Part shown: in pieces, positions 31,274 through 64,000 of the stretch | Numbering within the stretch: position 1 is the first letter of the stretch | Layout: each line of letters opens with the position of its first letter | Source: Paragordius varius | Lineage: Eukaryota > Animalia > Nematomorpha | Reading direction: 5' to 3' | Assembly: GCA_964247055.1 (NCBI GenBank) | Contig: OZ176056.1 | Location: 1,240,001-1,304,000, forward strand | Length of the DNA: 64,000 nt | Translations under genes and position numbers: made by a program | Notes under the pieces: generated by a model | Databases searched by the model: none | Told to the model about the DNA's origin: nothing | What the model saw: only the letters and a program-made list of their open reading frames with translations

Positions 31274-31555
31274 TTTATTTGTTATATATAATATATTTGG
31301 AAGATTTTCCATCTGAATATTAAAGATCAAATATTGTAGAAAAACTATTCACTAAGTTATTTATCTAATAAATATATTTGATATGTGTATATATTTCTTA
31401 AATTGACGATCGTTTAGAAGTTACCGTAAGTTAATATTAGATATAAACTGTAAAATACAATTTAAAACAGAAACTGCACATTGGTCTTATGAAAAAATAT
31501 ATAATTATAAATACTTTTCGGCGCATAACATGGTTCGAAAGAAATTGATTCAAGC

Positions 31556-35633: not shown

Positions 35634-35665
<32 letters not shown>

Positions 35666-37127: not shown

Positions 37128-37491
37128 GTATTATATGTTAATTTATTTTACCTAAGATCAATTTTTAGGATTTTTTTTATTAAATAAAGATTTAAAGTAT
37201 TAAATGTTTGCTTAATTATATTTAAATTTATGTATTTAAGGCCATTAAATTTATTATAAGTATATATAAAATGGAATTTTATACATTTTCTTACTTTTAC
37301 TGATTCCTGAAAACTTCAATTTTAAATTGTAATTGGAATAAATAGTTTCTCAGTTATCTGATCTTTTAAAAACAATTGAACGCGTCATATAATTTTAAAT
37401 AAAGCAATAATAATATTAAAAAGTTAAGGTTTGGTTTTCACAAAATTTTACATCGTTTTTATTGTATAAACGGTTTTAATTAGATTGATGT

Positions 37492-38615
37492 TTGATTGAT
37501 TTTAAACAAGCTTTGATATATGGTGTAGTTAGTCTTAACAATGCGGGACAATATGTTCTTAATCAGGAAGGTAATATACATTAAATTTTGTAATTTTACG
37601 CATATTTTTTTAAAAACATCTTTTTAACGTTATATATAGATTTGTCAAGATGGGTGGTCAAAATAAAAGGCGTATCCCTAATAAATGGCACAACCGCTGG
37701 AAATACAAATTCTTTAGATTTATTAGTTTTTTTTGCCAACCCCTTAATTAATTATCCTGAAAAAGCAAAAGACATCCGTGGCCTAGACATTTTTTTGAGT
37801 AGCCCGGGGAAAGATTTACCTGCTAGAAGAGGATTTATTTCGGTATATTTTTGATAGATTTTTATAATTTTAAATTTATGACAAGCTTTTGTACCCAAAA
37901 TCTGAAACTATAAATATCTGCGGTTTTAAACGACGAAATATAAGTTTTTATGACAATGTATGTGTGGTTAACAAGAGTCATATTTGAATCATAATATAAA
38001 GGCAAACGAGTACGTTTTATAACTAGTTGTCTAAATTTATATTATAAAATTTGCCTTTTTTACAGTAAATCATGAAATTATACGGACGAACGTAAAAATA
38101 TAAAGACAAATATTTTTTTAAAGTCTGCTGTAATTTTTTAAACGTATTTTTAAATATTATTCAAAGTTTTGGAATTTCAAAGTATGAAATAAAAATTTAT
38201 TTTAGTGATACGATTAATTATGTTATTTTCCAATTGCAATAAAATAATTTCTGTAAATGGTTTATAGTATGGTTATCTTGAAAAAGTATATGTCTTTATA
38301 TTTTTACTGTTATCATTATAATTTCAATTTTTACTGTAAAATTTTTTGAGAGATGTTCTGTCTGTATAAAAATCAATTTTTACTGTATTTCTCTATATAT
38401 ATATATATATTCGTACGACCCAAAAATTTTATGTATTTGTATAATAACTAATGTGTGCATTTCTTTTTTAGGCGGTTTCTGATAATTATCGCTTCGCATA
38501 TGTTTTGCCCGATACGGAATACGAGATTGTGGTTAGACCAGTCTTTATAGATCAAGATGCCGCATCCACAGAAGCAAGTTCACATCGTGTTTATGTTCAA
38601 ACGAATCGCTGCTAA
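37492..38615 (+). pseudogene. Probable DEG/ENaC channel fragment, copy 2
   Basis: Exons 37492-37570, 37640-37842 and 38472-~38590 (YVLPDTEYEIVVRPVFIDQD). Confidence 0.55.
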
Positions 38616-39015
38616 TCATGAAACTAAATTTTAAAAAAAAAGGATATAATTAAAATAAATATGGGTTATCGGGCGATGGTTTAAATTACGATGTGATATG
38701 TTTGATTAATTCATTTACAGATTAACCCCTTTTTTAATAATTTATCTATAGTATATCTTGGAAAGTACAAATAAATTTTAGTTATTATGGCTAATAGATA
38801 TAAATATATACCTGATCGAGTTGGGGTTTTATTTGCTTAATATTCTACATTACGCTTTTGTTGATAAAAGATCTCTCTCCGATGTTTCAATATCTACCCG
38901 TGATTTATTTTATGGACCCCAGTTTGAATTGAGAAATATTAGGAGATGACTTGTTGTAATACATTAATCAATATCAAATTTAGGAATTTATTATCATTAA
39001 CCTATGGATAGGAAT

Positions 39016-39170
39016 CTAACTTGATTTTACTGTAACGGTCAACACAGATTATCGTATTATTGTGTTTTACATCCACTGATTACCAAAGTCGCCATTTTTC
39101 AATAACAAGATTGATGTTTAAGGTTGTCTTATACGAGTAAATTGCAAGCAGATTGTGGAGGTCGGTTTAT
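39016..39170 (-). repeat. Single diverged inverted satellite monomer, copy 2
   Basis: Counterpart of 7405-7560. Confidence 0.85.
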
Positions 39171-39617
39171 TTTAAAAAAATATGAGACCTGGTTATTCTA
39201 TAAAAAGTCGATTTTCTTATAAGTTATTATCTTTAATATTTTCAAATTTTCGCTAATTTTTGTATGAAACTTACAGTAATTTAACTTACACAGACAACAT
39301 GCAAAAATTAAAAATAACCATTTCTTTTTTTGTTTTTTTTATTTAACTCTTTGGGTTGTGAAATGGGTATTAGAGATGTAAATTGGTATTATCTTATTTT
39401 TATAATCATGGGAATTATAATTTATGAATAAGTAGAGTAGTCTTTTATAAAATGATTTTTCAATTTTTCCATGTTGTGTTTGTAATATTAATAGTTGTGA
39501 AATAGCTTTTTCTCGTTATTGTACAAAATTATTAAAATATGAGCATATATAATTTAAGCAACAATCATTTTATTAAAGTTAATGTTTTTAAATAATAACA
39601 CACAAATAGAATACATA

Positions 39618-42600
39618 AACCCTACAACCTTCTCTTGTTTTGAAAATCGGTGGGTTCGGTGATGAGTGGTGGTAAAAAACAATAAAACGGTAACCTATTT
39701 AGTCCTTTACAGTAAACTCAAGTTAGCCAAGTCTTTACAATAAACCGTCCGGCAAAATCTGTTTTCAATCAATTCTCAACTCGTTAACAACCAAAACACC
39801 GTCTATCTTGTTACTGAATTGGGGCTTCGGTGATGAGTGGATGTACACAATAATACTTTAATCTGTTTAGTCCTTCATAGTAAACTCAAGGTAGCCAAGT
39901 CTTTACAATAAACCGTCCGGCAAAATCTGTTTTCAATCAATTCTCAACTTGTTAACAACTAAAACACCATCTATCTTGTTACTGAATTGGGGCTTCGGTG
40001 ATGAGTGGATGTACACAATAATACTTTAATCTGTTTAGTCCTTTACAGTAAACTCAAGTTAGCCAAGTCTTTACAATAAACCGTCCGGCGAAATCTGTTT
40101 TCAATCAATTCTCAACTCGTTAACAACCAAAACACCGTCTATCTTGTTACTGAATTGGGGCTTCAGTGATGAGTGGATGTACACAATAATACTTTAATCT
40201 GTTTAGTCCTTTACAGTAAACTCAAGTTAGCCAAGTCTTTACAATAAACCGTCCGGCAAAATCTGTTTTCAATCAATTCTCAACTTGTTAACAACCAAAA
40301 CACCGTCTATCTTGTTACTGAATTGGGGCTTCGGTGATGAGTGGATGTACACAATAATACTTTAATCTGTTTAGTCCTTCATAGTAAACTCAAGTTAGCC
40401 AAGTCTTTACAATAAACCGTCCGGCAAAATCTGTTTTCAATCAATTCTCAACTTGTTAACAACTAAAACACCATCTATCTTGTTACTGAATTGGGGCTTC
40501 GGTGATGAGTGGATGTACACAATAATACTTTAATCTGTTTAGTCCTTTACAGTAAACTCAAGTTAGCCAAGTCTTTACAATAAACCGTCCGGCGAAATCT
40601 GTTTTCAATCAATTCTCAACTCGTTAACAACCAAAACACCGTCTATCTTGTTACTGAATTGGGGCTTCGGTGATGAGTGGATGTACACAATAATACTTTA
40701 ATCTGTTTAGTCCTTTACAGTAAACTCAAGTTAGCCAAGTCTTTACAATAAACCGTCCGGCGAAATCTGTTTTCAATCAATTCTCAACTCGTTAACAACC
40801 AAAACACCGTCTATCTTGTTACTGAATTGGGGCTTCGGTGATGAGTGGATGTACACAATAATACTTTAATCTGTTTACCTTTACAGTAAACTCAAGTCAG
40901 CCAAGTCTTTACAATAAACCGTCCGGCAAAATCTGTTTTAAATCAATTCTCAACTCGTTAACAACCAAAACACCGTCTATCTTGTTACTGAATGGCGGCT
41001 TCGGTGATGAGTGGATGTACACAATAATACTTTAATCTGTTTAGTTCTTTACAGTAAACTCAAGTTAGGAAAGTCTTTACAATAAACCGTCCGGCAAAAT
41101 CTGTTTTCAATCAATTCTCAACTCGTTAACAACTAAAACACCATCTATCTTGTTACTGAATTGGGGCTTCGGTGATGAGTGGATGTACACAATAATACTT
41201 TAATCTGTTTAGTCCTTTACAGTAAACTCAAGTTAGCCAAATCTTACAATAAACCGTCCGGCGAAATCTGTTTTCAATCAATTCTCAACTCGTTAACAAC
41301 CAAAACACCGTCTATCTTGTTACTGAATTGGGGCTTCGGTGATGAGTGGATGTACACAATAATACTTTAATCTGTTTAGTCCTTTACAGTAAACTCAAGT
41401 TAGCCAAGTCTTTACAATAAACCGTCCGGCGAAATCTGTTTTCAATCAATTCTCAACTCGTTAACAACCAAAACACCGTCTATCTTGTTACTGAATTGGG
41501 GCTTCGGTGATGAGTGGATGTACACAATAATACATTAATCTGTTTAGTCCTTTACAGTAAACTCAAGTTAGCCAAATCTTACAATAAACCGTCCGGCAAA
41601 ATCTGTTTTCAATTAATTCTCAACTCGTTAACAACTCAAACACCATCTATCTTGTTACTGAATTGGGGCTTCGGTGATGAGTGGATGTACACAATATTAC
41701 TTTAATCTGTTTAGTCCTTTACAGTAAACTAAGGTTAGCCAAATCTTACAATAAACCGTCCGGCAAAATCTGTTTTCAATCAATTCTCAACTCGTTAACA
41801 ACCAAAACACCATCTATCTTGTTACTGAATTGGGGCTTCGGTGATGAGTGGATGTACACAATAATAATCTGTTTAGTCCTTTACAGTAAACTCAAGTTAG
41901 CCAAGTCTTACAATAAACCGTCCGGCAAAATCTGTTTTCAATCAATTCTCAACTCGTTAACAACCAAAACACCATCTATCTTGTTACTGAATGGCGGCTT
42001 CGGTGATGAGTGGATGTACACAATAATACTTTAATCTGTTTAGTCCTTTACAGTAAACTCAAGTTAGCCAAGTCTTTACAATAAACCGTCCGGCAAAATC
42101 TGTTTTCAATCAATTCTCAACTCGTTAACAACCAAAACACCGTCTATCTTGTTACTGAATTGGGGCTTCGGTGATGAGTGGATGTACACAATAATACTTT
42201 AATCTGTTAAGTCCTTTACAGTAAACTCAAGTTAGCCAAATCTTACAATAAACCGTCCGGCAAAATCTGTTTTCAATCAATTCTCAACTCGTTAACAACC
42301 AAAACACCGTCTATCTTGTTACTGAATTGGGGCTTCGGTGATGAGTGGATGTACACAATAATACTTTAATCTGTTTAGTCCTTTACAGTAGAATCAGGTT
42401 AGCCAAATCTTACAATAAACCGTCCGGCAAAATCTGTTTTCAATCAATTCTCAACTCGTTAACAACCAAAACACCGTCTATCTTGTTACTGAATTAGGGC
42501 TTCGGTGATGAGTGGATGTACACAATAATACTTTAATCTGTTTAGTCCTTTACAGTAGAATCAGGTTAGCCAAATCTTACAATAAACCGTCCGGCAAAAT

Positions 42601-45600
42601 CCGTTTTCAATCAATTCTCAACTCGTTAACAACCAAAACACCGTCTATCTTGTTACTGAATTGGGGCTTCGGTGATGAGTGGATGTACACAATAATACTT
42701 TAATCTGTTTAGTCCTTTACAGTAAACTCAAGTTAGCCAAGTCTTACAATAAACCGTCCGGCAATATCTGTTTTCAATCAATTCTCAACTCGTTAACAAC
42801 CAAAACACCGTCTATCTTGTTACTGAATTGGGGGTTCGGTGATGAGTGGATGTACACAATAATACTTTAATCTGTTTAGTCCTTTACAGTAGAATCAGGT
42901 TAGCCAAATCTTACAATAAACCGTCCGGCAAAATCTGTTTTCAATCAATTCTCAACTCGTTAACAACCAAAACACCGTCTATCTTGTTACTGAATTGGGG
43001 CTTCGGTGATGAGTGGATGTACACAATAATACTTTAATCTGTTTAGTCCTTTACAGTAGAATCAGGTTAGCCAAATCTTACAATAAACCGTCCGGCAAAA
43101 TCTGTTTTCAATCAATTCTCAACTCGTTAACAACCAAAACACCGTCTATCTTGTTACTGAATTGGGGCTTCGGTGATGAGTGGATGTACACAATAATACT
43201 TTAATCTGTTTAGTCCTTTACAGTAGAATCAGGTTAGCCAAATCTTACAATAAACCGTCCGGCAAAATCCGTTTTCAATCAATTCTCAACTCGTTAACAA
43301 CCAAAACACCGTCTATCTTGTTACTGAATTGGGGCTTCGGTGATGAGTGGATGTACACAATAATACTTTAATCTGTTTAGTCCTTTACAGTAAACTCAAG
43401 TTAGCAAAGTCTTACAATAAACCGTCCGGCAATATCTGTTTTCAATCAATTCTCAACTCGTTAACAACCAAAACACCGTCTATCTTGTTACTGAATTGGG
43501 GGTTCGGTGATGAGTGGATGTACACAATAATACTTTAATCTGTTTAGTCCTTTACAGTAGAATCAGGTTAGCCAAATCTTACAATAAACCGTCCGGCAAA
43601 ATCTGTTTTCAATCAATTCTCAACTCGTTAACAACCAAAACACCGTCTATCTTGTTACTGAATTGGGGCTTCGGTGATGAGTGGATGTACACAATAATAC
43701 TTTAATCTGTTTAGTCCTTTACAGTAGAATCAGGTTAGCCAAATCTTACAATAAACCGTCCGGCAAAATCTGTTTTCAATCAATTCTCAACTCGTTAACA
43801 ACCAAAACACCGTCTATCTTGTTACTGAATTGGGGCTTCGGTGATGAGTGGATGTACACAATAATACTTTAATCTGTTTAGTCCTTTACAGTAGAATCAG
43901 GTTAGCCAAATCTTACAATAAACCGTCCGGCAAAATCCGTTTTCAATCAATTCTCAACTCGTTAACAACCAAAACACCGTCTATCTTGTTACTGAATTGG
44001 GGCTTCGGTGATGAGTGGATGTACACAATAATACTTTAATCTGTTTAGTCCTTTACAGTAAACTCAAGTTAGCCAAGTCTTACAATAAACCGTCCGGCAA
44101 TATCTGTTTTCAATCAATTCTCAACTCGTTAACAACCAAAACACCGTCTATCTTGTTACTGAATTGGGGCTTCGGTGATGAGTGGATGTACACAATAATA
44201 CTTTAATCTGTTTAGTCCTTTACAGTAGAATCAGGTTAGCCAAATCTTACAATAAACCGTCCGGCAAAATCTGTTTTCAATCAATTCTCAACTCGTTAAC
44301 AACCAAAACACCGTCTATCTTGTTACTGAATTGGGGGTTCGGTGATGAGTGGATGTACACAATAATAATCTGTTTAGTCCTTTACAGTAAACTCAAGTTA
44401 GCCAAGTCTTACAATAAACCGTCCGGCAATATCTGTTTTCAATCAATTCTCAACTCGTTAACAACTAAAACACCATCTATCTTGTTACTGAATCGCGTTG
44501 TTCTTTGATAAGTGGATGTACACAATAATACATTAATCTGTTTAGTCTTTTACAGTAAACTCAAGTTAGCCAAATCTTACAATAAATCGTCCGGCAAAAT
44601 CTGTTTTCAATTCTCAACTCGTTAACAACTCAAACACCATCTATCTTGTTACTGAATTGGGGCTTCGGTGATGAGTGGATGCAATAATACTTTAATCTGT
44701 TTAGTCCTTTACAGTAGAATCAGGTTAGCCAAATCTTACAATAAACCGTCCGGCAAAATCCGTTTTCAATCAATTCTCAACTCGTTAACAACCAAAACAC
44801 CGTCTATCTTGTTACTGAATTGGGGCTTCGGTGATGAGTGGATGTACACAATAATACTTTAATCTGTTTAGTCCTTTACAGTAAACTCAAGTTAGCCAAG
44901 TCTTACAATAAACCGTCCAGCAATATCTGTTTTCAATTAATTCTCAACTCGTTAACAACTAATACACCATCTATCTTGTTACTGAATCGCGTTGTTCGGT
45001 GATAAGTGGATGTACACAATAATACATTAATCTGTTTAGTCCTTTACAGTAAACTCAAGTTAGCCAAATCTTACAATAAACCGTCCGGCAAAATCTGTTT
45101 TCAATTAATTCTCAACTCGTTAACAACTCAAACACCATCTATCTTGTTACTGAATTGGGGCTTCGGTGATGAGTGGATGTACACAATATTACTTTAATCT
45201 GTTTAGTCCTTTACAGTAAACTAAGGTTAGCCAAATCTTACAATAAACCGTCCGGCAAAATCTGTTTTCAATCAATTCTCAACTCGTTAACAACCAAAAC
45301 ACCATCTATCTTGTTACTGAATTGGGGCTTCGGTGATGAGTGGATGTACACAATAATAATCTGTTTAGTCCTTTACAGTAAACTCAAGTTAGCCAAGTCT
45401 TACAATAAACCGTCCGGCAAAATCTGTTTGCAATCAATTCTCAACTCGTTAACAACCAAAACACCATCTATCTTGTTACTGAATGGCGGCTTCGGTGATG
45501 AGTGGATGTACACAATAATACTTTAATCTGTTTAGTCCTTTACAGTAAACTCAAGTTAGCCAAGTCTTTACAATAAACCGTCCGGCAAAATCTGTTTTCA

Positions 45601-47672
45601 ATCAATTCTCAACTCGTTAACAACCAAAACACCGTCTATCTTGTTACTGAATTGGGGCTTCGGTGATGAGTGGATGTACACAATAATACTTTAATCTGTT
45701 TAGTCCTTCATAGTAAACTCAAGTTAGCCAAGTCTTTACAATAAACCGTCCGGCAAAATCTGTTTTCAATCAATTCTCAACTTGTTAACAACTCAAACAC
45801 CATCTATCTTGTTACTGAATTGGGGCTTCGGTGATGAGTGGATGTACACAATAATACTTTAATCTGTTTAGTCCTTTACAGTAAACTCAAGTTAGCCAAG
45901 TCTTACAATAAACCGTCCGGCAATATCTGTTTTCAATCAATTCTCAACTCGTTAACAACCAAAACACCGTCTATCTTGATACTGAATTGGGGCTTCGGTG
46001 ATGAGTGGATGTACACAATAATATTTTAATCTGTTTAGTCCTTTACAGTAGAATCAGGTTAGCCAAATCTTACAATAAACCGTCCGGCAAAATCTGTTTT
46101 CAATCAATTCTCAACTCGTTAACAACCAAAACACCGTCTATCTTGTTACTGAATTGGGGGTTCGGTGATGAGTGGATGTACACAATAATAATCTGTTTAG
46201 TCCTTTACAGTAAACTCAAGTTAGCCAAGTCTTACAATAAACCGTCCGGCAATATCTGTTTTCAATCAATTCTCAACTCGTTAACAACTAAAACACCATC
46301 TATCTTGTTACTGAATCGCGTTGTTCTTTGATAAGTGGATGTACACAATAATACATTAATCTGTTTAGTCTTTTACAGTAAACTCAAGTTAGCCAAATCT
46401 TACAATAAATCGTCCGGCAAAATCTGTTTTCAATTCTCAACTCGTTAACAACTCAAACACCATCTATCTTGTTACTGAATTGGGGCTTCGGTGATGAGTG
46501 GATGCAATAATACTTTAATCTGTTTAGTCCTTTACAGTAGAATCAGGTTAGCCAAATCTTACAATAAACCGTCCGGCAAAATCTGTTTTCAATTAATTCT
46601 CAACTCGTTAACAACTCAAACACCATCTATCTTGTTACTGAATTGGGGCTTCGGTGATGAGTGGATGTACACAATATTACTTTAATCTGTTTAGCCCTTT
46701 ACAGTAAACTAAGGTTAGCCAAATCTTACAATAAACCGTCCGGCAAAATCTGTTTTCAATCAATTCTCAACTCGTTAACAACCAAAACACCGTCTATCTT
46801 GTTACTGAATTGGGGCTTCGGTGATGAGTGGATGTACACAATAATACTTTAATCTGTTTAGTCCTTTACAGTAGAATCAGGTTAGCCAAATCTTACAATA
46901 AACCGTCCGGCAAAATCCGTTTTCAATCAATTCTCAACTCGTTAACAACCAAAATACCGTCTATCTTGTTACTGAATTGGGGCTTCGGTGATGAGTGGAT
47001 GTACACAATAATACTTTAATCTGTTTAGTCCTTTACAGTAAACTCAAGTTAGCCAAGTCTTACAATAAACCGTCCAGCAATATCTGTTTTCAATCAATTC
47101 TCAACTCGTTAACAACTAATACACCATCTATCTTGTTACTGAATCGCGTTGTTCGGTGATAAGTGGATGTACACAATAATACATTAATCTGTTTAGTCCT
47201 TTACAGTAAACTCAAGTTAGCCAAATCTTACAATAAACCGTCCGGCAAAATCTGTTTTCAATTAATTCTCAACTCGTTAACAACTCAAACACCATCTATC
47301 TTGTTACTGAATTGGGGCTTCGGTGATGAGTGGATGTACACAATAATACTTTAATCTGTTTAGTCCTTTACAGTAAACTCAAGTTAGCCAAATCTTACAA
47401 TAAACCGTCCGGCAAAATCTGTTTTCAATCAATTCTCAACTCGTTAATAACCAAAACACCGTCTATCTTGTTACTGAATTGGGGCTTCGGTGATGAGTGG
47501 ATGTACACAATAATACTTTAATCTGTTTAGTCCTTTACAGTAAACTCAAGTTAGCCAAGTCTTTACAATAAACCGTCCGGCAAAATCTTTTTTCAATCAA
47601 TTCTCAACTCGTTAACAACCAAAACACCATCTATCTTGTTACTGAATTGCGGGCTTAGGTGATGAGTGGATA
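39618..47672 (+). repeat. 167/168-bp tandem satellite array, copy 2 (~48 units, with higher-order structure)
   Basis: Same unit as array 1; variant units recur at a 668-bp period (42512, 43180, 43848). Confidence 0.98.
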
Positions 47673-49176: not shown

Positions 49177-49420
49177 AACATGATTTTCTGATTAACATAT
49201 ATTCTGAAAAAGTTATTTAATTATAACCTGGAAAAATGAACGTTAATATTAATGAATTGGCGGTGGTTAGGGAGGGCAGGTTGTTACTAACCATCATATA
49301 TAAAAATACCAGGAACGCAAAACATCAGACTCAGGATGCCAAGTCATGTAAATATTATCGTTTTTAAATAATATTTCTTTATGAATCTAAGTGATGCGTG
49401 GATTTCTGTTATCAAAAATA

Positions 49421-49597
49421 AACCATTTTTCACACGGGGTGGGCCCGAACTGGGGGCCTAATTCAAAAAAAGGGCGAAGCTATTGTCGGCGCATTCATTA
49501 ATGATTTTATTTTTTCGACATTTGGATTTGAATGGGTCCACCGGTTTTCCGGAAACACATTACAAAGCCAGCATTTTCCATTTTTATAAATATATAT
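49421..49597 (-). mobile_element. 5' fragment of the Helitron family at 27624
   Basis: Reverse complement of tatatatttataaaaatggaaaatgctggctttgt...cccagttcgggcccaccccgtgtgaaaaa. Confidence 0.85.
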
Positions 49598-50193
49598 ATA
49601 CTCACTACTTGCTTCCTCCCAATATTTATTGCAATATGTAATTAATTATATGGTGGCTGTAATGGTCTTGCGTTTTAACTCTATCAAAAATATTTGACGA
49701 TTTTTTTGAGATGAGCTGACTGCATTCAATTTGAAGGAATCAATTATAAATTAATCCATCCTTTTTGCATTTAAATTCCATAATTAGCGAAACTTAAATA
49801 ACTAATGGCCTAAAAAATTAAAATTAAAATATTACAGGAAAAGTATATATTATACTTATCCTGAAATAATGTGAAAAAAGATGTTTTTTGCTTCAAATTA
49901 TACATTTATTCATTCTAAAAAACTTATATTGTTGCTTAAATACTTGTATTTGGCATGGATTTACAAATCCCTTAATAATTAAAAATGTTCACAAAGTATT
50001 ATTGCAAAATATTTTTAAATCTTAAACGCAATTCAACTTTGTTTTGCTGTTATAACTGAATGTTTGTTAACTTGTTTATATATTACAGTGTAGTTGGAGC
50101 GTACCTTGTACTATGGATATCTGACCTTATAAAATGTTTTTTTAACGTGAATATCCAAATATTATTTTAAAAAGTATTTTATTTAATATTCCG

Positions 50194-53100
50194 ATGATGA
50201 ATGCTATTATGCGAACATTAATTTATAGTTTTATAGCATGTATTCTACTAACTCAAACTACAGGTAATTTGGGCCAATTTGTGGTTTTAGGAAATTTTTT
50301 TGACTGCTTTAAATAGTAAATTATGTCAATTATTAATTTTAAAAATAATTTACACATTCTTTAGATTTTCACAGTAATAGAAACAGTCAGTCACCTATTA
50401 GATACCTTTAACAATAAGACGTCTCTACTTCATATCCGACCAATAACATTTTTAGACTTTAGCTATGAATTTTGAGTTTCTATAAATTGCCAACAATATA
50501 TAAATTTAATATATTATAATACTAAATAAATATAACAAAATCGATTATGTTAAATCAATATTTATATAATACGCCATTATCAGTATTATGACATGACATT
50601 ATGTGATAAATCGCATTCGTAGTATAGCATTTTTAAAGTCGGTTTAAAACTTCAATGAAATGATTAAAAAGAGAAGTGTTTAACATTAGTAACTAACATA
50701 TAATTAGGTATTTGGTAGAAAACTTATATTATAAATAACTTATTTGAGTAAACGAAAAAACATAAACATTTTATCATTGATTAATAGTCATTATATAAAA
50801 TTTATATTAAATGGAAAAAATTTGAAATTATATTTGTTTATTAATTTGCAATATTAACAGTGATTTGATTAGTTCACACCTCTTTACCTTGAGGACAAGT
50901 ATTCGAAAAGCTCTTAAAAATACATTATGAGTCAACTTATTTATTGATTCGTATATTTCTCAATGCTATGGCATTGTTTTTTCGGATATAATAATAATAT
51001 TCAAATTTTATTTAAAAATATATGTAATTTAAGATATTCAAAAACAAAATTTTTTTAGAGTTATACATGATGCTTGGGTGAATTTAAATTTTTGTATTTC
51101 AAAGCCAATCGACCGGTTTTATATATTGATCCGTGCTATACGAATTTTAATAAATTTTTTATAAAACTATATAGCATATCGTAAACAAATTGTATTCGGT
51201 AAAGATATATATACACTTACATATTTTTATGTTTTTTTAATTATGATTTATTAAATTACTTCAGAATATTAATATTTATGATTAACTAATATAAACAAAA
51301 TTTTTTTTATAAAAAAAAGATATATTAGCAAAAGTCAATTGATATTTTTTACATATAGTTAACATTTTATTGTAAATTAGTTATTGAGATCAAAGATGAC
51401 AATTATTCACCTAATACTAATCAATCCAGGACGGACATTGAACAAAGTATACATAAATGCTTTTCTCGAAAAAAACTCTAAATATGCATTGCATTGGTTG
51501 TAGAATTATTTTTAAAATTGGTTCCAAATAAACAATTTTCTGTTTTGGCTGTTCCACAATGAAAAAAAAACTTTTATAGTTTCATTTTAAATGCCATTTC
51601 GCTTTTGATTTTAGTGTCTATGATACACTTGGTGTTTAAAGTCATTGTAAAATCTTGATTTCATATTTTTTAAAACCATTTTTGTAAAGAACCGGACATC
51701 GTATGATTCTAAATCATACATTATAAGAGATTTTTAAAAAGGAAAATGTGAGTTTTTAAACTGTTTATTACCGCGGTTTCCATTACAAAAACAATGCCGT
51801 TTCTATCTATAATAATTTATATATAAATTTATATATTAATTATTAGGAATTTCAGAAAATATTCAAGTTATAATTAAATATTATCCCTTTTTTGTTAGCA
51901 TAATTATATATATTAAGCAATCATTATTTATCTAATTCAAATTTTTGAATTTGCAGAATCTCACTAAAATACCCAACGTGTCGGTTACTGAATTTGCAAT
52001 AAGTAATATATTTTGGAATCAAATATATAATCTTTATATACCATTTACAATTCTAATTCACCCTCGAACAATTTAAATTCACCCTAAAATTAATTAAATG
52101 TTTTTCAAGATTAAACCTTATATTTTTATGTTTTGAAAGAATAAACATTTATTTAAAATTGAAATAATACTGAAAAGTAATAAACTAAGCTAATAAGATA
52201 TATTTCATATTAATAAGGAGTTATATTAGCCCGAAAACACCTAAATTATTTTTAGGGTGATTCTAATTGGTCAGGGGTGAATTTGAATTGTAAATGGTAT
52301 ATGCAATATTTTCATTTGGTTTAAAGTAGAGGTGTCCAACACTTCCGTGATAATTGGTGCGGCACGGGGAAAATTTGGAAATATATTTTTAAAAAATATG
52401 CCTATGAATATAAAATTAATATTTCTTAAAATATTTTCTGTATTATTTTATCCGATAGGCAATAAACTAGAAATTGATGTATATTGTTGGAATTTTTATT
52501 TTTTTATGTTTGAATAATAATATATACCATTTATAATTCAAATTTCCCCTCTCACTCAAATTCACCCTAACAATTCAAATTCACCCTAATTAATTATGTT
52601 TTTTCGGGATAATATAATTCATTAATAAGGAATATATTCTTATGGCATACATTAATTTATTATTTTTTCAGCATTATATTAATTTTAAACGGAAGATATT
52701 TTTAAAATAATATAAAAAGGTAATTTTTAATTTTAAAACATAATTTATTTTAGGTTGAATTTAAACTGTAAATGCTATATTTAGCTTATATATACTTCAA
52801 ATGCGGCCCGCCGATTTTTTGATTCAAAAATCCCCGAATCTATTTTATGTTCTTGTTTTAAAGGTTAAAATTAAATATTTAATATGATACTAACTTATTT
52901 TAAGTGATACACTGATTAATTAGAGCTCCATATTAGATAAATATTGGTTTGACCGATTAAAAATAACGGTTTTAATGTTTATAAATGCAATTCCCGCTTT
53001 AATAATATGAACATATAAATGCGGCTTAAAAAGTAAAAATTCAATTTTTACCAAATATATTACTAAAAATACTTATTTGGTCAAATTATGCTTACCATAG

Positions 53101-55558
53101 TCAAATTTTTATTTCTATTAGCCATATCATATAGTTGTTTAAGTATTGACTGGTTATTTTTAATACTTACAAGCGCGATGTAACCGTCAGTCTCAATAAG
53201 GAAATATTGTATCATCTGTTTTATTTTTTCAGATTCAAATGAAACTCAGTTGATGGATAAATATTATTATGAACAGTTCTCGTAATTTTAAAACTTAATT
53301 ATCTTCTGTATACTAATATTTACAGTAAATTTAAATTATACAGACAAAACGTAAAAATATAAATACAAATATCATTTTAACACGGCTATAGTTTTTGAAA
53401 CTTCATTATTATAATTATAACTCATTGTTTCAAACTGCAAAGTATAAAATAGAGATGTATATTGGTAACACAATTTATATATACTACAAATGTAAATAAT
53501 AGTTTATTCAGTAAAAAATTATGACAAAACATATAATTGCTTTTGAAAAAGATATTTGTCCTTATGTTTTCAGCTTTTGTCTTAGAATTCCGATTTTTAC
53601 TGTACAATATAATTAAGGCTTTACAAAAAATTTTAATCATTCTTTTTTAGGCAGGACCAGGAGAAACAAGTAAAAGCGTGTGGGTTTTATTCTATCCAAA
53701 TTTTAAGTTAAACATGTTTTAAAACATAGATAATTAAGAATACATATAAATTTTTATTATATGAATTTTAACACGTCGATTCAAATTGGTGTATCTAAAT
53801 ACCCCAGACTTAATTTGAGTTAGGATTTTTAAAAAATTACTGAAGGAAACGGTCCAAATTGAAATTTATGCTTCTATCCTAATAAAAATTATATAAATAT
53901 GCCAAAATATATAAATAAAATTTGTTCTGAAAAAAAAGTTCCACATCAAATTACTTCGACGCCATATTTTACAGAATTTTTGCAAAATATCGTCTTCATT
54001 CATTTTTAAGGGTAAAACTAAAGCGATTTTTTTATTTAAATTGCATCTAACATTGATAGAAATAGAAAAAACGTTTCTTTTGTATTATATTTCAATTTTA
54101 ATTGCACACATGTCACGTTGACTAAATTTTTACCTTTCAGTTTTAGCTTAAAATAAGTAATATCAAGTATATTTGAATGAAATTTTTAATATATTTCGGT
54201 TTATTAATGTTATATATGTACAAAATTTTGCCATATTTTCGATTCTTTCCATTTTTTTTAAGAATTAAATTTTAAAAAGGTCTGGGGTATTTAACTACCC
54301 CAATTTGAATCAAAAAACTAAAATGAATGTCTTGTAACCAAGTGTTAATGGTTGCTTATTTCACACTATAGTAGGGCAATTTGCAATATAGTAGTGTATG
54401 GAAAAAACAACAAAATCTAAAATAAACAATTTATTCCTTTCTTTTTTCCAGACACGGCTGTGTTGTATATTGCCCAACTATAGTGTGAAATAAGCAACTA
54501 TTAAAATGCTTACTGTATATTAACTGCCTTTGCTCAATTGTATATATCTTATTTTTTCAATAATTAATTGCCTCATTTTTTAGTCTAAGGGTTTATTTAG
54601 GTTACAATAAAAATTTAAATTATTTTTATAAAATGTTAACCAACGATCTTATAAATATTAAAATTTTGTTGATATAATTGGAAAAATTGACTTATTGGGC
54701 AGTATTTTAAAGCTCATTGTCAGGATTGAAATAAAGAGCGCCCATTTGAAATAAAAAAGCTTAACAATAATAATTACGAATAAAAAATAAACTTTGCCTT
54801 CACCGATTCGGAATACAAAGTCGAATCATTTTTATAATGTGTTGTTAAAATGGTTAAAGATTTTAATATGTAGTTTTTTAACAATAATTGTGAATTTTAT
54901 TCATTTTTAATTTAGCTGCGAATATAAAGAAAGACCCTAATAAAACGGTATATATATTTAAAAAAATGCATTAATAATCAAAATTTAATTTGCTTACTTT
55001 TATAATATTTAAAATTCTATACTGATAATTTTCCGTCCTTAGAATTTTAGTAGTATAAAATTTTGAATGTTATATCAACACGGTTAAAATAAATTCTCAT
55101 TGATATGAAATTTACATTAAATAAAACTTTATAGTAATATTAAAATTCTTAGAAGATATATGAAAGGCCGAACAAAACAAGCCCAATTTACCAAGGTCGG
55201 ACTCAAGTATGAAAATATATTTGTAATATAAAAAGGATTCTGCCATTGATAGAAAAAAACTTTCAGCTGCTTTTCCTGGTATCCTATTTTTACTCATATT
55301 TCTATTTTATATTTTTAAAATGGGACAGTTTGGACAAATAATTAGACCTAATGTCATTTATTGTCAATTTTAAGGATTTTATTTAAGGATTTAATCAATA
55401 AAAATAAAAACAGTACAATAACATTTTAAGATATAATAAAATTAGTTACTTTAATTTACTCACAATTAACAAACCAATAATTAGATAAGATGGGTAAAAA
55501 ATAGGGGTAACTAATACATATGGCTTTATGAGCCGCATTTTCGACTTAATACCAATAG

Positions 55559-55606
<48 letters not shown>

Positions 55607-58600
55607 TAATTATTCACCAATTTAGCAAAATTCCAGAGAATTTGAATGAATAAAATAAGTGGGCATATTTTTGCCATTCGTTATATTTCATATTTAATCT
55701 CTAATTGACAATTCACAAATTTTTGACTGCGTGTAGGATACTTCTGATTAAACCATATTAAGGATTATATCATTTTTAAGCTTGTAAAAAAATAATTATA
55801 CCAGTTATTTAAAATTTTTTGTGTATAAATATCGAAGAGTTTTGTCTTCAAAATTTATTTACTAATTAAATTTAATCATGGATATAAATTAGTTGTTGCA
55901 TCGATCGGAATAGGTAAATGTCTTATAAATATATTTGCATTATAAATATTTAAGGTGCTGTAGCTCCACAAGGTATTTCTTTATAATTGCTTTATATTAA
56001 ACATAATATTTAGTAATTTTAACCGTTAAAATTAATAAAAATATAGAAATTATTAAAACTAAATTATATTTTATCCAATCCAATATTTGATAAATTATTT
56101 ATATTTTTTTGGTGAGTTATTTTATTGTAAATTGATTTATGATTTTTAGAATTACTTTAAATTTGTTTTTATATTATGGACAAAAAATTTTTTTAATTAT
56201 TCTTACATATTTCAAGATAGTTATTATTAATGGTTAAAATGAGGATTTATTAGGCTCAGCAACGTGTAATTCTTTTGTTTAAAATTTACCAATTTAAAAA
56301 AAATTCACACTAAAAATATTTTTTTATTAAGTTATATTATTTAATATTTTTAGTGGCAGGTAAACATTAATGATTTAATTTATATTACAATTTTCATATT
56401 ACTGAAAAAGTTCAGGACAACCGCAACCGCAATTTAATACAGAATTTATTATATATTCGATTTAATTTTTTAGTATTTATATATGGTAAAATAAATAAAC
56501 CTTAATCATACAAACAAAACGGAAAAACTCAAAGAAAGATTTCTTTCCACAAAAGACAACTCTTTAAAATCTTGACTTTTTATAAAATTAACTTATCCTT
56601 TTGTGGTTTCGCAAATGGTAAATAGAGATTCAATAAAAACATGAAATTAAATTTTGGTAAATCAAGGCAAAACAATGTTTGACTTTTTTGAGAAATCTTA
56701 GTACGTTTTGTCCGTATAGTTTCACAAAGCAGTCTTTAATAAAGAATATGTTTTGATTCAAAAAGGTTAACTGATATGACCTTTTTAAGATATGAATTTA
56801 TAATATTAGCCTGTATGAATATATCTAGTGTATATATTTGATCCTAACTACCTATATTAATTAAAAGTATTGGCTAGAATCTTTTATTTTATGAAGTAAA
56901 AATATATAAATAATGTTTTAATCCAGTCATTACTTATCTTTTTGAGTCGCATTTAAAATTGCTTCATTTCAACTTGTATGTATATACAGTAAAATTGATA
57001 TTATACGGACAAAAAAAAATATAATGACAATATTATTTTAAAAAATCCAACCATATTTTTTAACCTATAAATTTATCCTATAAATATCGCAATAAAATAC
57101 ATAATTAAATTATGTTTCCAATATACATCTCTATTACATACTTTACAGTTTAAAACAATGAACTATGCAGTAATAACTGAAAATATACGGATAAAATATA
57201 AAAATATAAAGATAAATATTTTTTTAAAAACAACCATACTTTTTTAAATCTAAATTTTGCCATATAAATTATTTACTTTACAAAATATAAAATGTGTGAT
57301 TGATTGTGTTTTAAAAATCTAAAATTTAAAAAAGTGGCGGTCTTTTAGAAAAAATATTTGTTTTTATTTTTAGGCTTTGTCCGTATAATTTCAATTTTTA
57401 CTATATTTAAATAAATTAGGATTTAAAAAATATGGTTGTCTTTTGGAAAGATAATATTTGGCTTTATATTATTACAAATTGTCCGTATAATTTCAATTTT
57501 TACTGTATATCAACCGACAACATAACCAATAAATATAGAAAAAAACAGATTTATTTGTACGAACTGTATAATATCAACAATATATCTTTACTATTTTTGA
57601 AGTTTTAAAAAATGATAACATTTTAATTGATTATATTGCTATTAGCTCTCTGACTTAACAACTAGTCAAAACTATAATTTAAAGCCAACATAGGAAAAAT
57701 ATGATTATTTTTTAGCGCGTTACTATAGTTTGCTGTGGAGGCCATTTAAGGCGGGACGAATGTATAAGGACTCTGATTTTTTCACAAAATAATTTTAGCA
57801 CATTTTTTTTCTAACACGAAATTGGAAAGTTAATTGATAAAATATATAAAATTTTAATATAATTTGAATTACGAGTAGAGTTTGGATAAGTTATTCACCT
57901 AATATAAACATAAAAACATAAATTTTAGCCTTGTGATTTAATTTTTATATGAATTTGCAATTTAGTATTTTAATTAAATTTTTATAACTAATTGCTTTGT
58001 TAAATAAACGGTCACTTCAAAGATAATTTTTAATATTTTTAAATTATATAAAAATGTAATTTATAATACATATTTTTAAAAATGTAGCCACTGTCCTCAC
58101 AGGTAAAACTCAAATATTTTATAAATACAAATATTCTAGATGGAGGTATATTTGATCAAAAAATTATATGTTATATAAAAATTGATTATCAAACTAACCA
58201 TACATTATAATATATTTTGTTTTATATTGGTTTATCTCTAATTTTGGAATAGTTGAAATCACTGAAGCAGCTAAATTGGTTGAAACAATTGCGAATACTG
58301 GTAATATATATAAATATAATTCAATATTTTTTTATATAAAAAAAACTTTTTTTTGTAACTGTTTTTTCAATATTACAATAAGTAATTAAACACACTGCAA
58401 ATTATATAAAAAATTTTAATTGAAATATTTGCTTCGCTAAACTATTTCAAACCACTTAAAATCTATTTTGGAAATTTTTATGCATTGAATAAAAAAAAAT
58501 CTAAAAATCTAGAAAATGGAGGCGAATTGGCTCAATTAGAACCAGGTAATGACAAGTTAGTTTTAATTTTTGGGTGACAAAGTAATTATCAGTTCTAATT

Positions 58601-61600
58601 TTAAAATTATAATTATTCAATTACCGTTTATAAAGAATTTTACTTTTTGACTGTATTATACCCTACCTAAATATCTTTGGCGGTTTATGTTTAAAACTCA
58701 AAAAATCCTAGTTTATAACTTTTAGAAAATATTTATATTTTATTAGGGCTCAGTGTAAATCCACCATCAACTGAAGGTATTTTTTAATAAGTAACTGATT
58801 AATTTTACATTATCAAATATTGTTCACACAAGTTTAAGATTAATATCAAAAAGGTTGGAAATCTATGATAAATTAATTGCGATTATATAAATTTTCATTG
58901 ATAACTATCCATTTTCTCTTTAGTTTCTGATAATGCCATATCTGAAATTACCCCACAAAGCTCATCTGGTTTAATTTTTATATTATTATTATTATTATTA
59001 TTATTACATTACATGTTTTCACTCGTGAGAGCGGTCATGTTATACAACCTGTCTCGCCATAAAACTCTATCTATGGCGTCCTCTGCATTAAGCTCGTATT
59101 CTGCTAGCTCTCTTTTTACTGTATCTATCCATTTTGTTTTAGGCCGCCCACGTCCTCGTTTTCCCTCAACTATATAACCATCTATTATTTTTGCAATATA
59201 ATTAGAATCTCTCCTTTCAATGTGCCCGAACCAACGTAGCCTATTTTTTGACATTCTTTCCACTATTAGTTTAATATCTGTGCTCCCACGAATAAATCTA
59301 TTCTCGATTCTGTCCTTTCTAGTTACCCCACACATCATTCTGAGCATTTTCATTTCAGTCACGTTAAATTGTCTTTCTTCGGATTTTTTGACACCCCATG
59401 TCTGTGAATTATACATCATTGAGGGCTGGACAACTGAACTGTAAATCTTACCTTTCACTCTAACATCAATATTTCGATCGCATAATACGCTCGAAATTTT
59501 CTTCCAATTTACCCAGCTGCTCTTTATTCTTAAATTAATATCGTCAGTTAACGAACCATCTGCACTTAACATAGCTCCCAGATATTTGCAACTTTCTTTA
59601 CCCTTCAGAACCCAACTATCATCAACTACCATTTCATGTTGTGGACCCCCAAAAGTAATAAGTTCGGTTTTTGCTTTGTTTACTTTCAGACCATATTGAT
59701 CCAGCATAACAACCCATCTGTTTACCGTTCGCTTTAACTCAATTAATGAATCAGACAAGATGATTATGTCATCTGCATACATTAAGTACCATCCTGAACT
59801 CACATTAACAACCTTGGCTACCTCGTCCATACAAATTATAAACAATAAGGGGCTGAGTGATGAGCCTTGGTAGACTCCATGCTTTATTGAAAAGGGCTCT
59901 GATAAACCTTGTGGAGTTTTAATCCTGGAGGTGTGTGATTCGTACATTATTTGTAACAACTTAATATAACTTTCTGGCACCTTTTTACGACGGAGACTCC
60001 ACCAAATAGTTTCTCTAGGAATCCTGTCAAACGCCTTCTCTATATCAATCAAAACACCGTGTAATTCTTTCTTTTTTTCAATGTGTTTTTCAATCAACCT
60101 CCTAACCGCATGTATAGGATCTACTGTTGACTTTCCTGGCATGAAACCAAATTGATTTCCTTCTATAGATATCATTTTTCTGATTCGCTTTTCAATTATT
60201 TTTTCAAACAATTTCATAGTGTGCGACATAAGTTTTATCCCTCTATAGTTACTACATTCATTTATATCACCTTTTCCTTTAAATAAAGGCACAGTTAAAC
60301 TTTCCTTCCATTCAACCGGGATTTCATACGTTGAAACAACTTTATTATACACGCTCCAAAAAATTTAATCCAGAATTTCCAAGCACTTTCCAACAATTTA
60401 TATTTATGTCGTCCGATCCTACAGCTTTGTTGTTTGGCATTTCTAACAAATTAGATTGTACTTCCTTTTGTGTAATTGCTTCTATTGGTCTATCAGTAGC
60501 TTCAACTGTATTTGGCAATATCTCGCCTACCCCTTCATCTAAACTCACAAAGTACTCTTTCCATCTTTTTAATATTTCTACATTTTCGCACAGCAAGCTT
60601 CCATCTTTTCCTTTTATTGCAGTCGCATAACCTGGCAAATCCATCCTGCGTTTATTCCTTTGCTGCGCAACTTTATACACTTTGTTTAAACCTTGCTTAC
60701 TATTTAACTCATCATAAAATAAATTCATTTTTTCTTTCTTAACCTGACCGACTAATTTTTTCAATTCCTTATTTAAACTTTTATACTTATCTCTATCATC
60801 ATCATTTCTTGTATGTCTCCATTTGTCAAAAGCCTTACCTTTTTCTCGTGACATCAATATTATTCTTTCATCGTAAAGCCAAGCCTCTCTGTATACTTGA
60901 GATTTTCCGCCTTTTAATCCACAAACTAGAGTTCCTGCCTTTTTGATTAACTGACTTACTTTATCCCAATCACCATTTAACCCTCCATCCTCGGATAACC
61001 GTATTTCTTTTATAAAAGCCTGCCTTTTTTCGGATAATTTCTCCCACTTAATACTTTTTAATCTCTTTGAATAAGAACCACTTTGTTTAGACTTTTCTTT
61101 CACGAAAAATTTACAAATAAGTAAATTATGTTGCGAACTAACCTCTAAGTTTGGCACGACCTTACAATCTATCACAAGCTTCAATAAATCTCTTGGAACA
61201 AGTATAAAATCTATTTGAGATTTGTTTATGCCGCTCTTAAAAGTTACTAGATGACTCTCTCTTTTTTCGAAAAACGTGTTCGCTATCGCCAAATTGTGAG
61301 ATTGTGCAAATCTGAGCAAATTAATTCCTTCCTCGTTTCTTTCTCCATAAGAATGTCCCCCGTGCCATATTTCAAAAGATTCCCTTTTTGAACCAAGATG
61401 ACCATTAAAATCCCCACATAAAAACTTGACTCTGAGCTGAGGGAGAGCGACTATTTTTTCATCTGAAGTCTCGTAAAATTGCTCCTTTTCTTGTTTGGGT
61501 AAACCTATTTGCGGGGCATATATACTAAATACCGTTATGACCTCGTTACCTACCAAAATATCTAAATTCATGATTCGGCTGTTATAGCGTCTAACCTCTT

Positions 61601-64000
61601 TAACCTGATTGGACAATTTGGGATTAATGATAATTGCCACTCCATTTCGTCCGCCACTTTCACCTGAGTAATATAGTCGATAATTCTCTTCCAAAGTCCT
61701 TGCTCCGTTTCCGCGGTAACGAGTCTCTTGTAATGCCAAAATATCAATATGTTTAACTTTCATTATTCTCACAATATCATTTAACTTACTTTTCAATGAA
61801 CCAACATTTAAACTAGCAAAATACAGGCATCTCGTATTCCTTTTCATTCTCTTTGTATTATTGGCCACAACACCAAAACCGCGGCTGGCCAGGCCTGACC
61901 GGTTATTACTATACACATCAATATTCATTTGACAGCTTTAAACAAATAAAATAAAATAATAAAATTGAAGTGTCGAACTAATTATGACAAATTGATAGAT
62001 GTTAAAAAAAAACCTAGGCTATAGGTATAAACGGAAATTATATTTCGCAATAAAAAAAATTAAAGCAAAAATTATGTATAAAACAATATAAATCAAGGGT
62101 TATTTTATGTGTCATAGTAAAAAAAAAAAATAAATAGTGCTACAATACTTATCCAAGAATACGATCTATATATTTAAGAGAATATTAATAGGCAAATTAT
62201 AGGAAAAGGCCAACGGTAAGTCCTACGTCCAAAAACAAAATGGGAATAGGTATGTTATAACAAAATTTAAAGTATAGGATAAGTGATAAAAGATAGAATA
62301 AACTTTGAAGATAAATAGATAAGAATTTAGAATTTTTCTTTTGTGTAATGTACGAACTCGCGCGCGTACAAATCAGATGTTTTGGTTTAATTTTTATATA
62401 TATGTCTTTTTAATGTTTTACGGGAAATTATTTTTATGAAATACATATTATTTTTTCCACTTATATTTTAAACAGAGGCCACAGAACCCCAACCTGGACC
62501 ATCCAGTCTTCAAAGAAGTAAATTTTATTAGAATTTTTTAAAGCATATATGACCGTAACCGAGACCGTTTTTAAAAATATTAAGATAATATCATATGATA
62601 TGGTGTATGTACAATTATGTTTACAATAAATTTTTAGTTAAAAAATTTGCAATTGTATCAAATAATTTAATTAATATAACCTTTATTAATGTTTTGTAAT
62701 TTGTTAAATAATTTTAAAAAGCAAGCTAGCACATATATTTTTTGCTACCAAAGTTTTTTAACATATAAGCAGAACCCTAAGTAGGCTAAATATTATATCA
62801 ATTATGAAATGTATTAGTCCATATCACATTTATATAACATGAAACAAAATTATAAAAAATAGATGTCTAAAAAGACTGATAATAATTTTTTAACCTATTA
62901 ATTAATATGCAATCAAAATAGATACATCTCTAAAAAGATGAATGACAATAAAAAACCATATTTTACATAAAAGTTTATAAATAATCACGAAATATTATTT
63001 TTTTTATATATTTTGGCTAATTTATATTATCCTTTTGTAAAGATTAATGTATAAACTTAAGGTCAGTTGACCGATATTCAAAATTTAAGACCAAAATTAA
63101 GTTATTTCTTAAGGTTCTATTTTAATTTTACTGATTCCAGTATATATATATATATATCCCTAATTAGACTCTGACGTAGTTGACGATTATATAAGCGGTA
63201 TAATTTACATTTTAATCCAAAAAAGAAATATTTTAATATTTTAAAAGCCGATATTTTTTGCAAATAATGAAAAATTGTTTATATGTAGAGATTATTTTAT
63301 ATGTATAAAGTAATCAGACTTCATTTTTTGTTTGGTTAATTTATAAAATAAATTTCAAAAAATAAAATTGGATATTCAGCACTTTAACATAAGTGAAGTA
63401 ATTATATAGAGTCATTTGATATCGTAAATTCCTTTTAGTTAAGCTTAATATATTTAGAAAAGATAGATATTAACCAAAAAACTTTTCATTCCAACAAAAT
63501 AACACATAAAAACCGCTATCAAATATTTCAGATCGGATAAATTTGACTTAAATACGATTAAGGTAGAATTCAATTTATAATTTGTTTCTCATATTTAGAA
63601 CTTCAACCAAGTATACTATCTATAATATTTACATAAGGCAAAAGATTCAAAACTAGCCATGCCAGAATCGTTCAAGGTAAAATCCACAAAAATAATATTT
63701 TTTAATTTTTTTTTAAAAAATTTTTTTATTTCACTTCACATTTAAAGGCCGGCAAATATTGGAGCGTATGTGTTTTAAATTTGATTTTCTTACATATTGA
63801 ATATTTGGAGTTAATTGAGCAATTTTCGAAAACCATTTTTGCAAATATTAACATATCTTTGATTTTAATTATATATAAACCATATATAGATGTCGAGAAT
63901 TTAAACACTGGTATTTAGTTATTTATTGATATATTAATTATATTTATATTATGATTTTTTTTAAAAATTATTTTTTAAATTCGCAGAAGGATCTAATCTT
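50194..64000 (+). CDS. Secreted micro-exon gene A, copy 2 (open in all exons I could resolve; runs off the window)
   Basis: Signal exon 50194-50263; then 51381-51446, 51690-51700, 51728-51747, 51957-52002, 53233-53281, 53651-53679, 54916-54947, 55153-55206, 55236-55278, 55505-55557; then the run 55893-55913, 55955-55972, 56254-56265, 56354-56359, 56810-56827, 57716-57761, 57879-57889, 58088-58102, 58140-58145, 58253-58300, 58513-58545, 58747-58776, 58924-58968, 62476-62517, 63168-63197, 63638-63676, 63890-63910, 63987-end. Many differences from copy 1 are synonymous. Exons at 50.4-51.3 kb and 55.56-55.89 kb are unresolved. Confidence 0.75.
52041..52297. mobile_element. MITE family A, insertion specific to copy 2
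   Basis: ta|ccatttacaatt...aattgtaaatgg|ta; absent at the equivalent site of copy 1 (~18300). Confidence 0.75.
53772..54344. mobile_element. piggyBac-like MITE with TTAA target-site duplication
   Basis: TTAA|cac...gtg|TTAA (53768-71 and 54345-48); single TTAA at the empty site in copy 1 (~19771); internal inverted repeat gattcaaattgg..aaataccccagac. Confidence 0.8.
58983..62382 (-). mobile_element. Full-length RTE-clade non-LTR retrotransposon (~3.4 kb)
   Basis: 16-bp TSD TGGTTTAATTTTTATA (58967-82 and 62383-98), (TAA)n tail directly after the stop codon, ~450-nt 5' UTR; absent from copy 1. Confidence 0.92.
59009..61928 (-). CDS. APE endonuclease + reverse transcriptase ORF of the LINE, split by one frameshift near 60350
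   Basis: EN motifs LNVGSL, LQETR, YAPQ, GDFNGH, SQIDFIL, SQHNLL; RT motifs NYRGIKL, QFGFMPGKST, DIEKAFD, QGSSLSP, YADD. Confidence 0.95.

Follow-up and report, generated by a model that had tools for sequence, protein, structure and literature searches.

The 64,000 nt of the horsehair worm Paragordius varius analysed here (contig OZ176056.1, positions 1,240,001 to 1,304,000 of the forward strand; this whole stretch is referred to as the window) probably harbour a genuine duplicated phase-1 micro-exon gene, in which an exon encoding a signal peptide is followed by a long series of very short symmetric internal exons and which is predicted to encode an acidic protein. The window is very AT-rich (GC of 21-25% outside repeats) and contains a tandem duplication of ~33 kb, copy 1 of which extends over ~529-31400, while copy 2 starts at 32680 and runs past the window end. 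Each ~33-kb unit comprises acetyl-CoA-carboxylase-like exons, an array of a 167/168-bp satellite and the micro-exon gene, which spans 16443-31273 on the + strand in copy 1. At the level of the DNA sequence, the analysis shows the exon anatomy of the predicted gene, its open frame, purifying selection on this frame and the duplication itself.

The model of copy 1 consists of 25 exons with a reading frame of 693 nt from ATG to TAA (230 amino acids). All of its 23 internal exons have lengths that are multiples of 3, ranging from 6 to 48 nt with a mean of 25 nt, and the 19 internal exons of 36 nt or less contribute 402 of the 693 coding nt. Exon 1 provides 23 codons plus 1 nt and ends in phase 1, as the micro-exon chain requires, and every internal exon opens at the second base of a codon whose first base lies in the preceding exon. 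The introns of copy 1 measure 40-3133 nt, the phase-1 introns of the model overall 37 nt to 3.5 kb. The ~15-kb pre-mRNA of copy 1 would be spliced into an mRNA of ~0.8 kb for a secreted acidic protein. In the following list of features e1-e17 denote the pieces of an initial annotation of this DNA, xA and xB are exons added to it, and t1-t5 are the 3' exons of copy 1.

Copy 2 50128-50134, copy 1 16377-16383, + strand: TATA box (TATAAAA), conserved between the copies.
Copy 2 50194-50263, copy 1 16443-16512, + strand: exon 1 with ATG and signal peptide, 70 nt.
Copy 2 53655-53669, copy 1 19646-19660, + strand: candidate exon xA, 15 nt (GPGET), added.
Copy 2 55893-55913, copy 1 21197-21217, + strand: e1, 21 nt.
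Copy 2 55955-55972, copy 1 21283-21300, + strand: e2, 18 nt.
Copy 2 56254-56265, deleted in copy 1, + strand: e3, 12 nt (GSAT), doubtful.
Copy 2 56354-56359, copy 1 21632-21637, + strand: e4, 6 nt, identical including its flanks, too short to be verified singly.
Copy 2 56810-56827, copy 1 22088-22105, + strand: e5, 18 nt, with a conserved NIS sequon.
Copy 2 57729-57761, copy 1 22793-22825, + strand: e6alt, 33 nt, symmetric, replacing a pair of pieces of 46 and 11 nt.
Copy 2 58088-58102, copy 1 23150-23164, + strand: e7, 15 nt, two synonymous differences.
Copy 2 58140-58145, copy 1 23205-23210, + strand: e8, 6 nt, 37 nt after e7 in copy 2.
Copy 2 58253-58300, copy 1 23323-23370, + strand: e9, 48 nt, 47/48 identical.
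Copy 2 58513-58545, copy 1 23582-23614, + strand: e10, 33 nt.
Copy 2 58747-58776, copy 1 23799-23828, + strand: e11, 30 nt.
Copy 2 58924-58968, copy 1 23978-24022, + strand: e12, 45 nt.
Copy 2 62476-62517, copy 1 24089-24130, + strand: e13, 42 nt, donor lost in copy 1.
Copy 2 63168-63197, copy 1 24782-24811, + strand: e14, 30 nt.
Copy 2 63638-63676, copy 1 25294-25332, + strand: e15, 39 nt, 39/39 identical.
Copy 2 63748-63765, copy 1 25398-25415, + strand: xB, 18 nt (GRQILE), added.
Copy 2 63890-63910, copy 1 25555-25575, + strand: e16, 21 nt (DVENLNT), four synonymous and no non-synonymous differences.
Copy 2 63987-64000, cut by the window end, copy 1 25631-25651, + strand: e17, 21 nt in copy 1.
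Copy 1 27278-27292, 27335-27349, 29924-29944, 30708-30737 and 31051-31086, + strand: 3' exons t1-t5 (15, 15, 21, 30 and 36 nt).
Copy 1 31227-31273, + strand: terminal exon, 47 nt, ending in TAA.
Copy 1 31367-31372, + strand: AATAAA polyadenylation signal, 94 nt after the stop.

The initial annotation had joined AG..GT-bounded pieces of copy 2 into one open frame. All 18 pieces were recovered with AG before and GT after them, and their 455 joined nt yield the peptide given there without a stop. Its signal-peptide exon upstream at 50194 could likewise be confirmed as an exon of 70 nt (50194-50263) with a phase-1 end and a TATA box. The promoter and 5' region (50100-50193) is ~98% identical to copy 1, and exon 1 differs between the copies by three synonymous substitutions and one non-synonymous substitution. 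The claim that these pieces form a set of symmetric phase-1 exons held for nearly all of them; the pair of 46 and 11 nt did not fit, xA and xB had been missed and e3 is doubtful in view of its poor donor context and its deletion from copy 1. The pair (57716-57761 and 57879-57889) is doubtful because its 11-nt piece contains an in-frame TAG in copy 1; both pieces furthermore break the symmetry. Judging from the alignment of the copies, it is better read as the 33-nt exon e6alt, which uses an acceptor 13 nt downstream of that of the 46-nt piece and keeps the frame open in both copies, and the pair is retained as an alternative only. The splice sites of xA are intact in copy 1 and its sole difference is synonymous, as are all three differences of xB in the phase-1 frame.

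A "second micro-exon cluster" at 27278-31273 had been regarded as a separate entity. It instead represents the 3' end of copy 1, as t1-t5 and the terminal exon extend the phase-1 frame of e17 to the stop; this part of the model comes from copy 1 alone, given that copy 2 runs off the window. An AT-rich alternative last exon near 25915 was dropped in favour of the exons at 27278-31273. A phase-1-symmetric candidate of 66 nt at 51381-51446 has good splice sites and is open in copy 2, and it was omitted on account of a TAG in copy 1 and its mostly non-synonymous substitutions. The conserved 46-nt island was also considered as an intronic small RNA. The search of the whole window against Rfam gave no match at the gathering thresholds, and at E values up to 10 the region 57500-58000 gave chance-level matches only, so that this reading was discarded.

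The in-frame chain alone proves little, since the region contains 649 AG..GT segments of up to 60 nt. For this reason a scan with fixed criteria was applied to both strands, which accepted segments of the form AG/X/GT(A/G) if their GC was 0.4 or more and if they aligned without gaps to copy 1 with both splice dinucleotides preserved there. On the + strand it returned 19 candidates at 11 independent loci, and at 10 of these 11 loci the length was a multiple of 3 and the phase-1 frame free of stops (binomial P of about 1e-4). None of the six candidates on the - strand was a multiple of 3 in length. In the symmetric exons of the initial annotation (386 nt) the claimed frame is free of stops in both copies, as against 6-8 and 15 stops in the remaining two frames. 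The donors match the canonical context MAG/GTA, as 19 of 24 have A at -2, 17 of 24 G at -1 and 19 of 24 A at +3, and all acceptors read YAG or AAG. The exons have a GC of 0.40-0.42 vs a G+C of 0.20 in the introns. No conventional open reading frame (ORF) of at least 60 amino acids overlaps the exons, so that the locus is invisible to ORF calling, as had been proposed.

These results bear on the possibility that there is no gene at all and that the chain was cherry-picked from pseudo-exons in AT-rich DNA, or that only the exons of 30-48 nt are real and those of 6-21 nt are due to chance. The 649 segments indeed make such chains easy to build, the 6-nt pieces carry almost no information, and the two RNA runs described below gave nothing on the locus. 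However, pseudo-exons would not be expected to show the asymmetry of strand and length class under fixed criteria, the lack of stops in the predicted frame of copy 1 or the bias towards synonymous substitutions. They would neither account for the canonical context at donor positions -2 and -1, which is not required for an open AG..GT chain, nor for a complete frame from ATG to stop with TATA and AATAAA signals. The comparative statistics argue strongly against the strong form of this explanation, in which no gene exists, and we consider the explanation as a whole very improbable.

The duplication allowed selection to be assessed directly by comparing the two copies. Between them the exons are 92% identical (356/386) without any indel, whereas intron identity is 84% in 3494 aligned columns, to which 848 gap columns must be added. 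The synonymous distance (dS) of 0.15-0.19 is close to the Jukes-Cantor distance of the introns (0.18), as expected under neutral evolution of synonymous sites, and the non-synonymous distance (dN) is 0.05-0.06. The resulting dN/dS ratio (omega) is 0.39 on the exons of the initial annotation and 0.27 on the revised model (binomial P=1e-4), the value of 0.39 being the unbiased one since xA, xB and e6alt were added after their substitution patterns had been seen. The check on the concatenated exons that had been suggested therefore gave a ratio of 0.27-0.39, which is not near 1. In the revised model the 41 exonic differences are distributed over the three codon positions as 15/3/23 (chi-square P=6e-4). 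Exclusively synonymous differences occur in e16 (4), xB (3) and e7 (2), in agreement with the earlier description of four such changes in the 21-nt DVENLNT exon and two in the 15-nt TVLT exon. Taken at the level of the paralogous sequences, this pattern shows that the predicted coding frame is under purifying selection. The description of the exons as conserved islands in copy 1 was thus borne out by the identity values of exons and introns, except for the deletion of e3, the TAG in the 11-nt piece and the lost donor of e13.

The symmetric layout has consequences for the way in which the gene can vary. As every internal exon is of the 1-1 type, the skipping, loss or gain of any of them would keep the frame, and skipping could give rise to in-frame isoforms, which the symmetry permits. 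The same symmetry would allow the gene to withstand the loss of splice sites and the turnover of exons, and the predicted exons indicate that such tolerance is seen between the two copies. Copy 1 lacks e3, and its e13 donor has changed from GT to TT; an internal GT of this exon would yield a 30-nt exon that is still symmetric. Both the exon loss and the donor loss leave the frame intact because all internal exons are symmetric.

It is quite conceivable, at somewhat less than an even chance, that the gene is real but spliced constitutively, giving just one product. In that case the symmetric layout would be a side effect of the way in which genes of this genome became fragmented, for instance by phase-biased intron gain at AG/G sites or by serial exon duplication, and would not serve as an isoform device. 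Purifying selection with an omega of 0.27-0.39 fits a conserved single product, and isoforms were not seen, the two RNA runs having given no contigs on 53000-58990. Nothing speaks directly against this explanation; the presence of exons differs between the copies (e3, e13 donor), so that the layout tolerates variation.

Several observations weigh against a functional micro-exon gene for a secreted protein. Single exons of 6-12 nt (e3, e4, e8) are too short for a one-by-one verification. Copy 1 furthermore carries apparent lesions under some models, namely the absence of e3, the loss of the e13 donor and a TAG in each of two pieces, the 11-nt one and the 66-nt candidate at 51381-51446, and because of these lesions one copy may be decaying. 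Accordingly, copy 1 alone or both copies might be recently decaying pseudogenes of a once-functional micro-exon gene, for which also the presence of a 3.4-kb retroelement in an intron of copy 2 could be put forward:

Copy 2 58984-62382, - strand: non-LTR (long terminal repeat) retroelement, antisense in the intron between e12 and e13, present in copy 2 only.

Two ORFs of the element, which overlap at 60345-60352 through what is apparently a single frameshift, encode an EEP endonuclease and a reverse transcriptase. The element carries a (TAA)n tail and is flanked by an exact target-site duplication of 17 nt (58967, 62383). It is inserted 15 nt past the e12 donor, with which the target-site duplication itself overlaps. 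Since it is found in copy 2 only, it arrived later than the ~33-kb duplication. An antisense insertion into an intron need not harm expression, however, and the lesions of copy 1 are neutral to the frame owing to the symmetric layout. Under the revised model the frame is open in both copies, and omega is well below 1. Decay of one or both copies therefore appears quite improbable.

A further objection arises from the predicted protein. According to inspection and hydropathy, the product of the signal exon has a basic n-region, a hydrophobic core of 12 residues and a polar c-region. The mature chain of the copy-1 model comprises ~207 amino acids with an isoelectric point of 4.4 and a net charge of -20 (35 D+E vs 15 K+R). 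It is rich in E, G, I, A, L, S and T and contains one conserved N-glycosylation sequon (NIS). The only cysteines of the copy-1 model are residues 16, 45 and 51, two of them in the mature part and none in a C-x-C arrangement. From these predicted features it seems likely that the mature acidic protein is secreted. However, exons e1-e5 encode a second hydrophobic stretch at residues ~28-50, rich in Ala, Ile and Gly, which by its sequence could instead serve as a membrane anchor. In this case the acidic tail of 170 amino acids would lie on one side of the membrane. The Kyte-Doolittle mean over 19 residues reaches 1.94 at residues 28-46, above the usual threshold of 1.6. The insertion of this stretch is nevertheless doubtful because it includes P, Q, N and S residues, besides several G and A. 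A hand sum on a biological hydrophobicity scale suggests that it would not insert, and in copy 2 GSAT (e3) is inserted in the middle of the stretch. A membrane-anchored product is thus regarded as unlikely.

Finally, the search of sequencing runs provided little on expression. Four DNA-like runs contain ~55% of the words of the locus, and five small RNA runs contain none. The runs X1, X4, X5 and X7 were assembled onto 53000-58990 at 90% likeness. X1 and X4 behave as DNA, as their unspliced contigs cross the exon-intron borders and cover the introns, and they thereby confirm the assembly at these borders. The RNA runs X5 and X7 gave no contigs on 53000-58990. This is weak evidence at most and does not argue that the transcript is absent, since exons of 48 nt or less may be unalignable and the gene may be stage-specific.

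Taking these objections into account, the duplicated micro-exon gene remains the probable reading, and the features of its surroundings are described here for completeness. The satellite arrays, one per ~33-kb unit, are located at 8071-14111 (36 copies of the 167/168-bp unit) and 39655-47671 (48 copies) with 94-95% matches. Diverged single satellite units occur in inverted orientation at 7405-7559 and 39016-39176. Acetyl-CoA carboxylase-like exons covering an N-terminal biotin-carboxylase part and a central part were detected at 2040-2444 and 5338-5523, with a duplicate at 33930-34283. They run into the satellite array, and the best database matches of such an exon are only 65-70% identical, to butterfly, fungi and oyster alike, and carry no lineage signal; these exons may represent a truncated gene fragment. 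The half of the unit with the satellite and these exons is ~92% identical between the copies (2646-14127 vs 34285-45678), whereas the half with the gene is 72-85% identical (15882-25617 vs 49637-63952). This unequal divergence of the two halves of one duplicated unit suggests that one half was homogenised by gene conversion or unequal exchange.

Other repeats lie within or next to the gene. The long intron between t2 and t3 of copy 1 contains about four tandem GC-richer repeat units of ~530 bp (27621-29543), the series of which is closed by a poly-C tract at 29543-29562. An inverted partial copy of this repeat is situated at 49398-49599, just upstream of the promoter of copy 2. In the DNA runs the intronic stretches 53200-54600 and 57000-57600 reach summed word depths as high as 3.4 million, compared with 2-8 thousand nearby, and are very high-copy repeats resembling miniature inverted-repeat transposable elements. 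Related copies of ~290 nt were found at 6413-6695, 19351-19601 and 38059-38342.

The layout of the gene agrees with what has been published on the schistosome micro-exon genes (MEGs): downstream of a signal exon these carry 10-20 or more symmetric exons, each only 6-81 bp long and mostly a multiple of 3 in length, with introns of 0.1-5 kb between them (10.1101/2023.06.21.545858; PMC4350168). Shared features are the predicted signal-peptide first exon, the many very short symmetric exons with much longer introns, a hydrophobic stretch directly after the signal peptide, the small product, the tandem or duplicated gene copies and the difficulty for gene finders. The MEGs are documented to be alternatively spliced, to be expressed in glands and to have secreted products (10.1101/2023.06.21.545858; PMC4350168). 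MEG orthologues have a high dN/dS, around or above 1 for several of them (PMC4350168), in contrast to the purifying selection at the present locus (omega of 0.27-0.39); a high ratio is a typical property of MEGs and not a strict criterion. An aromatic FL..F..W-type motif has been described in MEG proteins (10.1101/2023.06.21.545858). By eye, neither this motif nor any other MEG protein motif was seen in the predicted protein. The proposal of a MEG-like system consequently holds for the layout, and the dN/dS shows constraint on the predicted frame instead of accelerated evolution.

The bicycle genes of Hemiptera are similar in their phase-1 grammar. They possess on average ~17 small internal exons, nearly all of which start at codon position 2 (PMC9168663), and encode rapidly diverging proteins with an N-terminal signal peptide and no detectable homologues (Korgaonkar et al. 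2021; Stern & Han 2022, PMC9168663). These proteins carry paired CYC motifs and act as salivary effectors of aphids, phylloxerans and scale insects (PMC9168663). The predicted gene shares with them the many small internal exons starting at codon position 2 and the predicted signal peptide. However, it encodes neither a CYC motif nor a C-x-C, with two Cys in the mature part, and due to the lack of CYC motifs the locus is not a bicycle gene.

The exon arrangement is also reminiscent of Patthy's exon-shuffling rules, according to which extracellular proteins contain 1-1 symmetric exons and phase-1 introns follow their signal peptides. At the present locus the signal exon ends in phase 1 and the following internal exons are all 1-1. 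In extracellular animal proteins, however, a 1-1 exon usually corresponds to an entire folded domain (40-100 residues), whereas the exons of this locus each contribute 2-16 residues to an acidic chain that is probably unstructured.

All in all, the locus is in our view probably a real micro-exon gene and a variant of a known gene design, namely the layout of MEG and bicycle genes. It adds to this design a complete ATG-to-stop model, a paralogue pair allowing a direct test of selection (which is purifying) and examples of frame-neutral exon turnover. More tentatively, and with a probability that we put well below even, it may belong to a class of phase-1 micro-exon genes that evolved independently, is spread over the genome of the horsehair worm, a lineage that is neither flatworm nor hemipteran, and encodes secreted or surface proteins. 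As in the schistosome MEGs, frame-neutral exon skipping would then supply these genes with families of protein variants. To our knowledge, the only published micro-exon genes are the MEGs of schistosomes and the bicycle genes of sap-sucking Hemiptera, and no paper on micro-exon genes in Nematomorpha was found in the literature searched. The products of both known classes are secreted proteins acting on the host. If such a class exists in the horsehair worm, it would represent a third, convergent origin of the micro-exon gene design in a parasite. Since this design is missed by ORF finders and most gene predictors, the annotation of this organism may lack an entire class of secreted or surface proteins. 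If the same phase-1 grammar is present in a third, unrelated lineage, this would speak for convergent evolution and provide a system in which the recognition of 6-nt exons and the origin of micro-exon genes could be studied.

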